Part shown: piece after piece, positions 36,995 through 43,465 of the stretch | Position numbering within the stretch: position 1 is the stretch's first letter | Layout of the letters: the number at the start of each line of letters is the position of its first letter | Source of the DNA: Epithemia pelagica | Taxonomy: Eukaryota > Protista > Bacillariophyta | Length of the DNA: 64,000 nucleotides | Direction of reading: 5' to 3' | Assembly (NCBI GenBank): GCA_946965045.2 | Contig: OX337228.1 | Coordinates: forward strand, 62,001-126,000 | Made by a program: the position numbers and the translations under genes | The notes under the pieces: generated by a model | Told to the model about the DNA's origin: nothing | Databases searched by the model: none | What the model saw: the letters and a program-made list of their open reading frames with translations, nothing else

Positions 36995-37849
36995 GAACTA
37001 TAGCATTAGAGTGTACCACCGACTCATAAATTTGGAGCAACCACAACAGCCACGCACAAATAGTGAACCATTGTTTTAGTAGTATGTTGGAAGGATTCTC
37101 GTACAAGAACCAACTCCGTAGGACGTAATCTCCTCACAACAATCTCATGGCTACTACGTGGGACAAAATCATACTCATGCCATCTCTCTGCTGGACGACA
37201 CGAACAAAGCACTCGAACGACACTCGATACCAAGAGAAACCGTCTTTTCATCCCAAAGCATGTGTGCCCATTTGTATATGCAGGGGGTTCCATCGTCTTT
37301 TGTGGAACCGTAGGAGTGTGTGTATGGGTGACGTTGTATACGACGACCGCTGATCCTCGGGGGGGATGTATTCTCCCCACACGTGCCTAGTTACTATAGC
37401 CCGAATTTTTACTGTACTCAAATTTTAGTTTTAGTGTATATAAGTAAAATTTTCGGTCGTGGGAAAAACCCAAAAAATGAGGCGAACGGAAACCGTCACA
37501 AAATGAGCCGAAACAGACCACGAAAAACAAACCGCGTGCAACAACAGCAACAACAACAGCAACAAGAACAACAATAGCAACAAGAACAAACAACAGCAGA
37601 GCCAGGACAAAGACAATGTAACAAAAAGGACATCACAACCAACCAGACCAAAGGATAAAGGCGAGACATGAAGACCAACCAAAGAGAGATACAAGGCGAG
37701 ACAAGTCGACAACCAAAGAAGGAAGGCAAGGCAGAGAAATGCAAAGACAAAGGCAAGACAAAGCAAAAACAACAGATAGCACCAGAAAAAACAGAAATCG
37801 AAGAGAGCCATTAAGAGACAACAATCAACAAGGAATAGGGAGGGTGAAT

Positions 37850-37915
37850 GCATTCGAGGAGGACCAAAATCAAAGAGAAACGGCATTCGAGAAGGACCTA
37901 AATCAAAGAGAAATC
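37850..37915 (+). repeat. 33-bp tandem duplication inside the element's left arm
   Basis: gcattcgag(g/a)aggacc(a/t)aaatcaaagagaaa at 37850 and 37883. Confidence 0.85.
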
Positions 37916-38110
37916 AAGATTAAGGTTAGACATGCCTTTGGAAAGAACACAGCAATCAAGAAGGAACAGCAAAAGACAAACTTACCTATGGATTTGTAGC
38001 GAACATCACAAAGAGCTCAAGCATCAACCTGTTAAGACGAAGATGGTGAGAGAATAGCAATAGACAGACAGCAAATCAAACGAAGTAACTTACCCATTTC
38101 ATTCTGTCAT

Positions 38111-41100
38111 TCAGTAGTGACGACCCCCGTGGTTGAAATGGTAGTGATCACCGCCATGTCGGTGATAGCCACTGTGGTGGTTGCCTTGGTTAGGCCACGA
38201 AGAAGATGCAGGATACTGACGTGGAGGCGGTGGTGGCGAGGAATGATGGTGATAGTGATGGACCGTTGGGCCATTCACACGGGACGAAGGAATAGGAGGA
38301 GGTGGCGAATATGATCGAGGAGGGGGTGGCGGAGGGGAAGGCCCGCGGTAATGATCGTAACGGGGTCCATACGATGGTGGAGGTGGAGGAGGAGTCCACC
38401 CACCATGGTTACGATCGCTCGAATGGTAGGAGTACGATCGAGAATGAGGGGGAGGAGGAGGAGGCGACCGATTGTAGTGGTTGTCGCGTTGGTGGTAGTG
38501 ACTGCGACTCTCGTTGCGCTGGTAGTTGTGCTGGTAGTTGTCGTGTTGGTGATGAGAGTGTGTGGTGTTTGTTGTATTGTTGTTGTCCCATGCAGAAGGA
38601 GGAAGGAGCGGGGGTGGTTCGTCCTCGTCGTCTTTTTTCGCGGCTACTGGTGGAGATTTTTTCTTAGGTTCCTCTGAAACGAGAACAGTAGAGAGGTAAG
38701 AAACAGAAGTAGTAACAACATGCATTAGTCAGACAACAACGTACCTTTTTTGGTTTCTTCTTCGTCATCGGATGGCATGTACCAATGGGCCGTCACTGCC
38801 CTCTGTTTCGAGTGGTCCGTCACTTCTTGATACTCAAAGTTGATCTTTTCACCCTTGTGGCGGCCGTAATTCGTTGCAAGAGGTTGAGGAACGCCCGAGT
38901 TCGCAACCGTGGTGATCCCAGTTCTCCGAGCGGAACGACCAGTAAAGTTGCCGGTTCCTTCGAAACCACAACGCTTAGCCAACTCTTTCGTGTTGCGCGC
39001 AGCGAAATTTTCGCCCAACTTTCCACCAGGACGCATGCCAGTCAACGGATTAATCTTTGTTTTCGACATATCAGGAACAAGATCCGTCCAGGCACGGTGA
39101 GTCGATCCGTCAGTGCGTGTGGCAATTACTTTGGCGGGTGCTTCACGAAGGAAGAAGAGCCCTTTCCAACCCGGCGGGTGGGCAACTCTACGGTACTCCA
39201 TGACCAGTTTGTAGGTGCTCCATGGATCCTTGGGGTTTTCCACAATCATGTTCCCTTTGCAATCCACTGCGCGCCGGAACGAAGGGTTGGCAAGAGTCAA
39301 TTTTACATTCTTATGGTGACCGGAGTCAAGAGGGATGATCGCCGCCTTACCAGCGAGATCGCCGTGCGAATCATCTAGACTTTTAACAAATAGAAAGTCT
39401 GTTACTTTTGCTAAATGCATCTGAGTAGAAACAACAAGCAGAGGTGAGAAGCGTGTGATCCATACGACAATCCAACGGATCGTGGACGTACCTCTAGACA
39501 TCGAAAACTACAGTCACGGCAGACTTTGTAGAACACCATCATGAGGAGATCCTTGTAAATTTCAAACGGACGAAGTGGAGGACTCGCATACTTTCGCATG
39601 GACTTCTCGTCGTTGAGGCAAACTCCGGCTCGTTTGGGAAGTCGGCCAAACTCAGAACGGACGGTGGCGGTTTCCGACCACAAGTTCTCCAAGTAGGCAT
39701 GGTACGAGCCCTCCCCTTTGAGGTCCGACTGTGTGATCACGACTCCATTGGCTCGCAGGATGGAAAAGATGTGATTGAGCACTTTGCCGGTCGTGTTTGG
39801 CTGGTAGTGATACTTGGGGTCATGCGGGTCGTGCTCCCCCTTTTTGTACCCAGCCATCCGAAGATTCATGCAAAAAATCATACACAAACTGTTTAGCAAC
39901 CCCAATTTACCGCGTGTAATACCCCCCCGGAGAGCAACAAAAAGCTTGGGCACCTTCAAATTCTCGCCCTTTTCAGTATCAGGATCAATGATGGGCGCCG
40001 CGAGTCCTCTATAGTGTTTATGGCGACGGAGAATGTCTAAGAATCGTTTGAAAGAGTCCGCCTTGGCCTTGTTGTACGACTCCGAGTTCTGCGAGAGCTC
40101 GCGAACGTCGTACTTGTGGTTCTCGTCTTCGTACACATCCTCGCTGATGCGAGCAAAGGTGTTCCAGTACTGAATACTGTCCTTGGTGTGTGGCACATCC
40201 ACAGGGAGTTTTCGATACTCCGCAATCATCAGCTCGCCATCCTCATTTTCGGTCACATGTCTCTGCTTGACGCATGCCATGGCAATGGTTCGTGTATCGA
40301 GTGGAGAAGGGGGACCAATGGCAGCAGGAGGATGATGTTCGTCCAGTGGTTCCTCGTCGTCCGTATCTTCCAACAGGTGATACCAATCGTCTTCATCTTC
40401 ATCGTCATCGTCCCTGAAAGAAAGAACGACATTCGTGTGAGACACAACAATCATACAAAAGAAGGGAGTATCTCATCCTCAACTTACTCCGGAAGATAAG
40501 GAACAAGAGGAGGAAGACGATCGTCTTCTTCGTCGTCATCTTCCTCGTCGAAAAGGGAAGGACGATCCTTCTTCCCATTGGTGCTGAAAAAGAGGAGGCC
40601 ATTCTTGTCAGACACAACAATCATACAGAAAAGAAGACGGCAATGATGATCCAACAACTTACCTTTCTTTCGGGTGAGGATGGTGACGAGGAGGAGGAGG
40701 AACGTTTTCCTTCCCATTGTCGACGGTGGGAGGAGGAAGTTTCTTCTTCGGATGAACCTTCTTTGTTACCTTCCGAACAAGAGGGCGAGGAATGTCGTCT
40801 TCCTCTTCATCGCGGTACCTCTTCTTGGCTGCTGCAGCAGCAGCTTGGCGTTTAGATCGACGGGGGCGGAGCGGAGTCTTGGCCATGGTCTTTCGTTTCC
40901 TGCAATGCGATGCAAAAATGGCAATGGAAGAAAAAGTGTGAGGTTTGTTTTGCACGGTAAACACAGCAACGAATTCAAAAATGGATGAGGCGGGGCACGC
41001 GCGCAGGAAGAAAAAGGAAGGAAGGAAGAGTCGCAGGAAGGAAGACTGGTCGACAATGACAAAAAACAACAATCAAACTTACATTTTCTCCAACTTGGCA

Positions 41101-41372
41101 AGGTACCAAGGATCGGAATGAACACTGTGAGCGTCGGTGTCGCTCCCAGTGCATTCATCCATCTTTGGAACGAAGGTACCGTCCAAAGGTACGAAGGCGA
41201 GTGAGATGGCGTCCGACGAGGATGAACACAACGATAAAGACGACGAAGACGATGAACACGACGACAAAGACGACGAAGAAGACGCAATGGAGATAGGAGA
41301 AGACACAATGCCACGATGTCCCTTGTCCTTGGAAGGCATGGGGCTGACAACGGCCGTAGGAGGTTTCGTCAT
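38111..41372 (-). CDS. Tyrosine recombinase (Crypton-type), 927 aa, 6 exons (41372-41083, 40899-40663, 40583-40488, 40413-39492, 39420-38745, 38673-38111)
   Basis: YQPNTTGKVLNHIFSIL core-binding-like helix; SFRCLE (Arg I); HHKN; FTGRSARRTGITTVANSGVP; GRHK; FEYQ (Tyr). All five introns are GT-AG, and the exons sum to 2784 nt with no internal stop. The exon 1 start codon is less certain. Confidence 0.85.
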
Positions 41373-41624
41373 GGTCAGGTCTTCCTTTTTCCAAACGAAT
41401 GATGAAACACAACGCCCAACACACAAATGCGGCCACTTTATCTGCTTGGAAACTCGTAGCTCCTAAGTAACCTCCAAGTATATTTGTGAGTCCTAATTAG
41501 ATTGTTCCTAATTGTCGTAAGTAATCTTTCTTTACAATGGTACTGTTTTCCTATGTATTCCAAACAATTAGAAAACTCAACGTACTTTATTACATCCCCC
41601 CCTCGGACGCAACGGACGCCTATG

Positions 41625-41821
41625 ACATTTGCTGCTCGGAACGCTTCTCGTCGGGGGCACTCGTCGGGGCGTAACTCCTCGAAGGGCAATAGGTCCTCGT
41701 CGTGGACTGCCCCTATATCCGCTGACGCGGGGGGCAGTCCACTCCTCGGACCTATTGCCCTTCTCGTCGTTACGCCCCTCCTCGTGCCTCCCTCCTCGAA
41801 GCTACTCCTCGCAGCAAATGT
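41625..41821 (-). other. Rod-like hairpin with nine tandem G.A/A.G mismatches (structured ssDNA or RNA element, unknown class)
   Basis: Watson-Crick helices catttgctgc, gcttc, ggcac, ggggcgtaac, gaagggcaataggtcc and gtggactgcccc are separated by tc/tc on the + strand (GA/GA on the - strand). Apical loop ccgc-GTCA-gcgg on the - strand. Confidence 0.9.
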
Positions 41822-43465
41822 AATATTACAACAACAAGAAGGCCGGGGGACGATCCCTGGTTCCGTTTCCTACACACGCTTGACCTTGGCCTCCGACCGG
41901 GGGTGGTTGTTGTTGGTGTTGTTTTGCTGTGGTGGTTGGGAACCAGAAGACGAACGACCCCGACAACGAAACGTTTGCCACACCACCAGACCCAACCAAA
42001 GGAGGGCTGTTCCATATTTGCCGGCATTGGCCACTACAATCACAGTCCAAGAATACCACCACGAGTCGTCACTTTGTATGGTTCTCGGTTGTTCAAGAGC
42101 CCGTCGACAGGCGAATTGCAACAGAGAAGTTTCCGCCACGTCGCAAATCCACGTCGTACACACCGGCCCCCACACACGCCAGTGCCGGAGACACGTGCCA
42201 CAAGGAGGAGGAACCACGAGTGTTTGTCGTCGTCCAGGATTCTTGCTCCCAACTCCCATACACGAGACTGCTGAGCGCCACAATGTAACAGGGCATGTAC
42301 CACGCCAAGTCAATATACGAAAAGTCAATGTACTGACGTTGTTTGGTGGCGGTCCACGCTTCCACAATCCATTCGGACAATAAGGCCTCACTACTACTAC
42401 GGGTCGTCGTACCATTGTTGCCGCGCAAAAAACACAACAAGACCATGTCGGGGAGCCACACGCCTCGCGTCACAGCATACATGGCAAGATTGCCACACGC
42501 GGTCAAGACCGCCAAGAGAGTCAAGGATCGCTTCAAGTGATGCGCACCCCATTCACACAGCGCACTGTACTGACAAGCCAACCAATAAACCCGCTTCCCA
42601 AACCCTGCCATTGTGGCTCCTGGTGCTGCCATGTCTGGACGAAAGGTATCGACGACGATAACAAGTGTCAAACCCAAAGGATTCTTGGTTCCTCAAAGAG
42701 ACACTTTTGGTCTTCATGGAGGCCTCACCCGAGTCGTGAAGCGAACTCCCAAAGATACCAATTTCATCCGCGTTTAGGTCGCTCTTTACAGTACTTGTCG
42801 ATGGATTCCCGATCTGTGACTGCAGTCCCATGAGGAGATTCATGGATTCCCGATCAGATGGGTCGTGGTTCGGTAGCCTCTGTAGTGTTCGCATCCTTCG
42901 GAAACAGGAACGAATTCCAGATGCAGATCTTTTGGGTGCCACGACGCCATGTGTCTCGCGTGGATTCCTCCCCTCACTGCAAAAGCAATTCGTCGACCGA
43001 AAGAAAAAGAGAGAAGACTGAGAAGATACCTGTCTCTTCCATTGATCTTCTTGTGTGCGGGTTGTAGGAGTATTATCCACCACGATACTATACTGGCATT
43101 GAATACGATCTCGATACACAGCAAGTCCAAACACGTGTGTGATTTGGGAAACAGTGTTGTGTGTGGGCAAGTGCAAAAAGTGATCACACCAAGCAACATC
43201 TTGGTAGCAACAGCATCAGCAGTAGAGGCCGTTGGAAGAATTGTCGATTGAACCAAACGCATCTTCCTGCCTGCCTTGCGTCATTTTCGGGGGACCAAGA
43301 GTGACACACGACTCTTGGCTGTGTGACATCGGGCCGCCAAACCAGGAATATATCAGTGAGTATAGAAACAGGAAACGAAGGATGAAACCGTGTGGAGGGA
43401 ATCCTACCCAACAACCACTGCGGCGTGATGGTGCTTTATCTTCATCATCCTTTCATGAATGGCGA

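Follow-up and report, generated by a model that had tools for sequence, protein, structure and literature searches.

The window analysed here, 64,000 nucleotides of the diatom Epithemia pelagica (contig OX337228.1, positions 62,001 to 126,000), is identical to contig ctg1325l of ENA assembly ERZ21939226 (locus L005) and carries at positions 37344–41829 (4,486 bp) a candidate mobile element whose only gene, on the minus strand, encodes a tyrosine recombinase (YR). With a probability of roughly 70%, this interval represents a copy of a Crypton-type DNA transposon of young age, with a lone six-exon YR gene, with ends corrected by comparison with other copies, and with excision through the joining of these ends. 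An earlier reading of the same letters, referred to below as the original prediction, had placed an intact, intron-containing, YR-only transposon of the Crypton kind at 37355–41606 and proposed that its ends rebuild a compact loxP/dif-like site. On the sequences of its copies, it is best read as a young element of Crypton type, from a diatom family not yet described, rather than as such a compact lox-like design.

The single spliced gene occupies the 4.5 kb; no reverse transcriptase, DDE transposase or other enzyme was found in the element, and no Pfam family in any exon piece. The six exons are joined by GT..AG introns, stay in frame and encode an intact protein of 927 amino acids, in agreement with the uninterrupted six-exon reading frame of the original prediction. 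In 5′ to 3′ order on the minus strand, they lie at 41372–41083 (exon 1, with a predicted start codon at 41372 and a frame open across a GT..AG intron, by prediction only), 40899–40663 (exon 2, a basic region) and 40583–40488 (exon 3, an acidic linker), the latter two from splice reconstruction, followed by 40413–39492 (exon 4, a conserved N-terminal helical domain), 39420–38745 (exon 5, the catalytic domain) and 38673–38111 (exon 6, a Pro/His-rich low-complexity tail with the stop codon and no Pfam match). The exon 1 region is 67% conserved with a related family (B2, see below). Four read runs of one study (X1–X4) cover the region and were examined as assembled contigs. One 1,056-nt contig of X4 lacks 38029–38093, a 65-nt intron of the 3′ untranslated region (UTR) with minus-strand GT..AG ends (CT..AC, cut +2) and a predicted donor, and is evidence of a spliced transcript; the skip is absent from runs X1–X3. 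The 3′ UTR (window 37500–37920) is strongly A-rich, with an AT skew of 0.28 and CAA-type repeats, and contains a 33-bp tandem duplication at 37850–37913. Another GTAAG donor, at 37985, hints at one more intron in this UTR.

The identity of the protein is poorly visible to profile searches. Pfam returned no match on four exon pieces, including none at E up to 1, and among ten homologues the sole relevant match was a weak Phage_integrase in one of them (P0046, E 0.004). Because Pfam is silent on all exons, the YR assignment was tested by other means. HMMER found only 95 relatives among 1.84 billion representative proteins. One of these, P0025, is a transcript-derived protein of 1,027 amino acids from the diatom Entomoneis paludosa, which runs unbroken over the joint of exons 4 and 5, in agreement with the predicted splice; no full-length relative of P0025 other than P0025 itself turned up in a search. 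Sequence searches of the PDB were weak, the single protein finding nothing and the family profile XerA only (E 0.31), so that a comparison of folds was needed. The AlphaFold model of exon 5 (pLDDT 87) has YRs as all of its top 28 Foldseek matches in the PDB. With VIA-align, 23 rows, namely 22 YR entries and QRICH1, score at Z 8.7–6.0 and the next fold at 3.5; the top rows include XerA, Cre (residues 175–341 aligned), XerH, IntI, the Tn1549 integrase and the Crypton-derived domain of QRICH1. Fold matches in AFDB are best for proteins with DUF3504 and Tyr-recombinase domains, down to E 2.8e-7, and the neighbours in the ESM Atlas comprise hypothetical proteins of diatoms and oomycetes together with phage integrases and DUF3504 proteins. 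As modelled, the protein belongs to the YR superfamily, on its Crypton/DUF3504 side, and the fold matches together with the catalytic residues bear out the YR assignment originally proposed.

In the family alignments, R512 and E515 (an R-x-x-E motif at the end of exon 4, with the first catalytic arginine) are invariant, as are R680, H703 and Y712 of exon 5, with K552 and R677 nearly so. The spacing R-x2-R...23...H...9...Y is identical to that of Cre, in which the counterparts are H289, R292, W315 and Y324. The catalytic set of a Crypton YR is present with one departure: of 38 family members in the alignment, at least 90% have arginine (R677) where the tetrad histidine is expected. The Trp/His position before the tyrosine is always histidine in the same 38. 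In vaccinia type IB topoisomerase, the active residues are R130, K167, K220, R223, H265 and Y274. The Epithemia enzyme resembles these topoisomerases in having a basic residue three positions before the second arginine and His, not Trp, ahead of the tyrosine, as assigned by spacing and not by superposed side chains; the basic residue is Arg here and Lys there, and no other sign of topoisomerase ancestry is found. The exon 4 domain (window 39492–40100, residues ~320–515) contains the motifs YQPNTT, GSYHAY and FGRLPxRA. Its helical model reaches pLDDT 75–90 at residues 110–305 and gave no credible fold match in the PDB; it presumably represents the DNA-binding half of the recombinase.

Eight paralogues at other loci of the same assembly (L001–L004 and L006–L009) form the copy set together with the window copy, which belongs to family A. 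The closest of them, L004, is 98.7–98.8% identical over window 37344–41833 and has unrelated flanks; 24 substitutions and two indels separate the two copies, both frames are kept, and the six amino-acid changes all fall outside residues 208–740, while L004 carries an in-frame insertion of 24 nt in exon 6. L001, 96.7% identical, shares the left end of the window copy and is truncated at its right end. The other six copies constitute four further families with ~40–65% protein identity to the window copy, namely the pairs L002/L008 (B1, 99.1% mutual identity) and L003/L007 (B2, 94.2%) and the single copies L006 (C) and L009 (D). Intact genes are thus present in two copies, those of the window and L004, at unrelated loci. 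A domesticated or dead recombinase gene, immobile in the genome, would be in line with the three premature stops of L001, but is hardly believable in view of these two intact-gene copies, 98.8% identical over their aligned length, of the near-identical pairs in other families, of a family that is not syntenic and of one haplotype that is probably without the insertion (see below). Judged by its sequence, the Crypton-type element is young and probably still mobile, and on this point the near-identical intact copies sustain the original prediction.

The same copies define the ends. The homology starts in every copy with C-(G/T)-ACC, 11 nt to the left of the first CCTCGG (37355–37360), and stops in every complete copy with GTA-N4-TAC, 223 nt to the right of the second CCTCGG (41601–41606) and beyond a 205-nt hairpin. 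The end regions are ~80% identical between families, the coding DNA only ~66%. The letters that had been quoted for the ends are in place, with CCTCGG followed by GGGGGATGTA (37361–37370) on the left and TACATCCCCC (41591–41600) followed by CCTCGG on the right. However, homology past CCTCGG at independent loci means that the flanks taken as chromosomal (ccgctgat and acgcaacg) are element sequence, and so is GCTGATCCTCGGACGCAAC, the remnant with a single CCTCGG that had been expected to stay in the chromosome. The original prediction was to fall if other copies had boundaries different from 37355 and 41606, and they do: independent copies have a further 11 bases in common at the left end and a further 223 at the right. 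From this comparison, with the span taken from L004, the left start from L001 and homologous ends from families B1, B2, C and D, the exact ends are read as CGACC... on the left and ...GTAATATTAC on the right (41820–41829). Another candidate, a terminal inverted repeat of 12 bp between duplicated TC dinucleotides, was also rejected, the homology between copies extending past it.

A model in which the element spans 37355–41606, CCTCGG is crossover and target, and the circle TACATCCCCC-CCTCGG-GGGGGATGTA acts as a loxP/dif-like site can draw on motifs that exist and are perfect, and on the maintenance of CCTCGG and the inverted arms in family B, with an altered form in C and D. It is nevertheless scarcely tenable. 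The supposed host flanks, 11 nt on the left and 223 nt with the hairpin on the right, are found again at each independent locus and have diverged along with the recombinase. No empty site (GCTGATCCTCGGACGCAAC) was found in the window (up to three mismatches), in the first three fetched loci (L001–L003) or at read joints, and no solo remnant in the window, ~200 kb of fetched loci or the read joints. Read depth is the same over the hairpin as over the element interior, and a contig that lacks the element (see below) also lacks 41601–41828.

With the corrected ends, the terminal regions acquire a structure of their own. The left end (37344–37370, plus strand) is a 27-nt site that runs from the first base of the element, through CGACC and CCTCGG, to the arm noticed originally; its inverted 28-nt copy (41591–41618), which contains the second arm and CCTCGG, lies 211 nt inside the right end, the gap being filled by the hairpin and TTAC. 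In families A and B1, the left site and the reverse complement of the right-internal site agree at 22/28 positions each, and in family C at 26/32. Within these sites, the inverted arms, proposed as perfect over 10 bp, in fact extend to 12 nt (GGGGGGGATGTA); exactly two such motifs, on opposite strands, exist in the 64-kb window where 0.23 would be expected even with one mismatch, so that chance does not explain the pairing. Their spacing differs from that proposed: once the true ends are joined, the arms are ~250 nt apart and do not directly flank a 6–8-bp spacer, which removes the 26-bp loxP/dif-like junction. The hairpin itself (41621–41825, 205 nt, imperfect) is supported by inverted-repeat pairs, by folds and by ~80% conservation between families. 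The plant precursor family MIR1858 of Rfam was matched on 41621–41824 at 47.9 and 38 bits on the two strands against a gathering threshold of 137; this was set aside as a generic hairpin likeness.

Since the 27/28-nt inverted repeat stops at 41618 and leaves a 211-nt hairpin module outside, a nested arrangement has to be weighed, in which a CCTCGG-bounded recombinase element is inserted site-specifically into a separate hairpin repeat of ~245 bp. All hairpin units seen (9/9) are occupied, none being solo, and every recombinase family possesses its own co-diverged hairpin. Furthermore, the left end covaries in pairing with the segment just ahead of the hairpin. In X1 and X3, summed contig depth over the element, hairpin included, exceeds flank depth by a factor of four to five, and the lack of a depth excess over the hairpin argues against free-standing hairpin units. 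Nesting is therefore very improbable.

When the ends are joined in silico, a single hairpin of ~280 nt forms in all eight complete copies (families A, B1, B2, C and D), at the base of which the left end pairs with the right-internal site. The idea that joined ends complete an inverted-repeat structure thus holds, with the arms originally noticed inside it; these arms sit at the base of a long hairpin instead of around a short core. Folding energies of the joined ends range from −82 to −90 on the plus strand; those of the minus strand, the more stable of the two in all eight copies, are −87 to −96. For family A, the value is −87.5 with joined ends versus −76.7 with the native right flank. The arms have been rewritten between families and yet remain complementary, as GGGGGGGATGTA/TACATCCCCCCC in A and TTGCCTAGGTA/TACCTAGGCAA in C, and in family D (GTCGTACC/GGCACGAC) at 7/8 positions. 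Even the second base of the element, next to the crossover, covaries with the partner opposite, as G–C in A and as T–A in the other families. Of 70 consensus pairs, 21 have both members changed, and six of these 21 span the junction; this covariation was counted on eight sequences from five families and is suggestive rather than formal proof. Taken as such, it suggests that selection has kept bases paired, or two binding sites matched, from one side of the junction to the other, which supports a joined-end form of the element and, indirectly, a putative circle.

The palindrome is interrupted in a regular manner. The plus strand of the joined-end region (278 nt) contains 12 CTCG and no CGAG, each having a background frequency of 4.1 per kb. 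Six CTCG lie on either palindrome arm, and the two CCTCGG stand at the two extremes of the series, the left one (37355–37360) being the 12th of 12 same-direction motifs and not a crossover core. Motifs that run in the same direction on both arms cannot pair, and CTCG faces CTCG to give T·C/C·T mismatches on the plus strand and tandem G·A on the minus strand. In family D (L009:6797–7050), both arms have CGAG instead of CTCG at the four innermost interruptions, so that the conserved feature is a symmetric like-with-like mismatch rather than the sequence of one strand.

The junctions with host DNA point to a short target. NAC follows the right terminus in 8/8 junctions, mostly as NACA(C), and is AAC at 41830–41832 of the window; GA precedes the shared first C in 5/7 left junctions and lies at 37342–37343 of the window. 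An intact target is preserved beside L001 and reads GAGGAC/CACACGG, with the slash, here and below, at the point of exchange; it displays both GA and NAC as host sequence. Right and left junctions and this preserved target together give a host site of roughly GAC/NACa and map the crossover to C/NAC. This site resembles the joined ends of the element itself, TAC/C-(G/T)-ACC, over ~5 bp. In four informative insertions, the free base is of element type at the left and of host type at the right, which places the exchange at the C just before it. No target-site duplication is seen; the junctions share an imperfect C.AC, with the second base free, shorter than the repeats published for Cryptons. CCTCGG, proposed as crossover and 6-bp target, is neither, as the crossover falls at TTAC/CGACC, 11 nt outside the left CCTCGG. 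A target without the element would read TATACGAC/AACAACAAG. L001 itself is an aberrant insertion, cut inside the 5′ hairpin arm (equivalent to window 41691) and flanked by a perfect host duplication of 97 bp (L001:8671–8767 and L001:13130–13226), the right copy of which continues into the intact target.

Direct traces of an element-free chromosome and of a circle were sought in the reads. One 845-nt contig of X2 (record 9), similar in depth to a flank–element junction contig, joins 37048, 295 bp outside the left end, to 41829 through an intervening stretch and lacks 37049–41828. As its right breakpoint is the last base of the element, it is most simply explained by an element-free haplotype with a diverged or rearranged left flank, and the window insertion is probably hemizygous. 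A search for an alternative haplotig through both flanking genes returned only the window's own contig in the assembly. No contig joint of X1–X4 fits the empty site or the circle of the original prediction, or a circle joining 41829 to 37344. Similarly, a scan of JGI metagenomes, a collection probably without the organism, found neither TACATCCCCCCCTCGGGGGGGATGTA, the circle junction originally proposed, nor ...ATATTAC/CGACCGC.... Contigs drop rare forms, so that the absence of a circle junction means little.

These observations can be assembled into a mechanism. The recombinase would excise the element by joining its ends, TTAC to CGACC, presumably as a circle. In the resulting junction region, the two 27/28-nt sites would flank the hairpin and the TTAC/C crossover point; the recombinase would recognise these two sites and exchange strands at TAC/C with a GAC/NAC host site. 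The hairpin may be extruded as a cruciform, may fold as a single strand or may only space the binding sites.

An alternative keeps the corrected ends and has them processed as a folded single strand, with one-strand exchange at TAC/ and replication resolving the product; the minus strand would fold into a rod stabilised by G·A pairs, in the manner of integron attC sites or of CTX-phage attP with XerCD. All 12 interruptions are like-with-like (12 CTCG and 0 CGAG on the plus strand), so that one strand carries tandem G·A pairs, and this is the strand of greater stability in every complete copy. The informative junctions (4/4) fit a single fixed exchange point, and the cut hairpin and host duplication of L001 fit replication-coupled resolution. 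On the other side, no single-stranded or replicative intermediate was observed, 4/4 junctions are statistically weak (p about 0.06), and the reversal of the inner four motifs on both arms in family D implies that no single strand is consistently favoured. Extrusion of a double-stranded cruciform, or plain protein-binding sites, would account for the same data. Processing as a folded strand is thus unlikely, though well above the other alternatives. The broader proposal, that the recombination site is a mismatch-punctuated hairpin of ~280 nt across the joined ends, used as a folded single strand or a cruciform with one fixed exchange point, is likewise doubtful.

Several points weigh against a Crypton-type transposon that excises by end joining. 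Pfam recognises no integrase domain in the protein, and the R-H-R-Y tetrad has arginine in place of its usual histidine. Of the five coding introns, four are known by prediction only, as is exon 1. The terminal direct repeat is merely C.AC and imperfect, below the 4–7 bp given for Cryptons. The joined-end junction is in neither contigs nor metagenomes, which is a weak objection, and there is no clean empty site, the left side of the X2 contig joining at 37048 instead of 37343. Finally, covariation of the inverted repeats could come from co-evolution of the protein with its sites as well as from base pairing.

Comparison with known systems places the element near Cryptons. Cryptons (Goodwin et al. 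2003; Kojima and Jurka 2011, PMC3212892) are described with terminal direct repeats of 4–7 bp and without inverted repeats; most CryptonS elements end in TATGG, and CryptonS-1_PTri of Phaeodactylum tricornutum, the only literature Crypton from a diatom, is 4,671 bp long and has CTGTAAG termini (PMC3212892 supplement). Like Cryptons, the Epithemia family relies on a YR as sole enzyme, lacks a reverse transcriptase and long terminal repeats, is present in low copy number, shows a very short sequence common to both junctions, contains introns, lives in a stramenopile host and has its nearest folds in Crypton-derived DUF3504 domains. Unlike Cryptons as described, it possesses inverted repeats (27/28 nt) that form, with the ~205-nt hairpin, a split palindrome. 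It also departs from CryptonS in its C.AC junctions and its termini, CGACC... and ...ATATTAC in place of TATGG or CTGTAAG, and in its recombinase, with R-S-A-R-R and H...Y where CryptonS-1_PTri has H-S-A-K-R and W...Y. It differs from CryptonF by the absence of a GCR1_C domain from the element protein (Pfam, E up to 1). These differences agree with the statement in the original prediction that neither CryptonS nor CryptonF motifs fit. A literature search found no description of a Crypton with a split palindrome; in its inverted repeats and long structured end, the element departs from the published Crypton description.

With Cre/loxP and XerCD/dif, the element shares the fold (Z 8.2–8.7 to Cre and XerA), two inverted recombinase-sized arms that face each other after end joining and a crossover at the edge of one arm. 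In contrast, its arms are 27/28 nt long and ~211 nt apart (hairpin and TTAC) rather than 6–8 bp, CCTCGG lies inside the arms, and the partner site in the host has ~5 bp of similarity. The proposed use as a compact lox-like integrase tool with a 26-bp site is not supported, the site being long and structured and the host target only ~5 bp. Integron attC and CTX-phage attP sites are similar in being imperfect hairpins with conserved regular mismatches that adjoin an apparently single fixed exchange point; these are bacterial sites of 60–150 nt, whereas here the structure measures ~280 nt, belongs to a eukaryotic nucleus and is whole only across joined ends. This likeness is one of structure and junction pattern alone. 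The integrases of Tn916 and Tn1549 are also YRs with a circular intermediate (here a putative one) and tolerate non-identical crossover bases, and their fold matches at Z 6.1–6.3; they differ by variable coupling sequences of 5–7 bp on both sides, by the Xis protein and by their bacterial hosts.

Crypton ends are notoriously featureless and their circle model was drawn by analogy. To our knowledge, no Crypton transposition has been reconstituted so far. In the Epithemia family, the ends and a short target are defined, the gene is intact in two copies, one insertion is probably hemizygous and the end structure covaries; with such assets, the circle model and a role of DNA structure become directly testable in a culturable alga. 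The conserved end structure makes sense only with the ends joined. If the site were indeed used as a folded strand or cruciform, integron attC or CTX-phage integration would have a counterpart in the nucleus, and the movement of any Crypton would be open to a structural approach for the first time. The element is thus a good experimental entry point despite the refuted lox-like design.

Two further observations concern related loci. The contig of one B2 copy (L007, ctg905c, 25,936 bp) has a name ending in 'c', by which the assembler possibly flagged it as circular, and also carries a Copia-type reverse transcriptase. At L011:5690–5870, a CTCG-punctuated hairpin of ~180 nt, present in a single copy, lies upstream of a further recombinase gene, whose family shows 44% identity in the catalytic domain.

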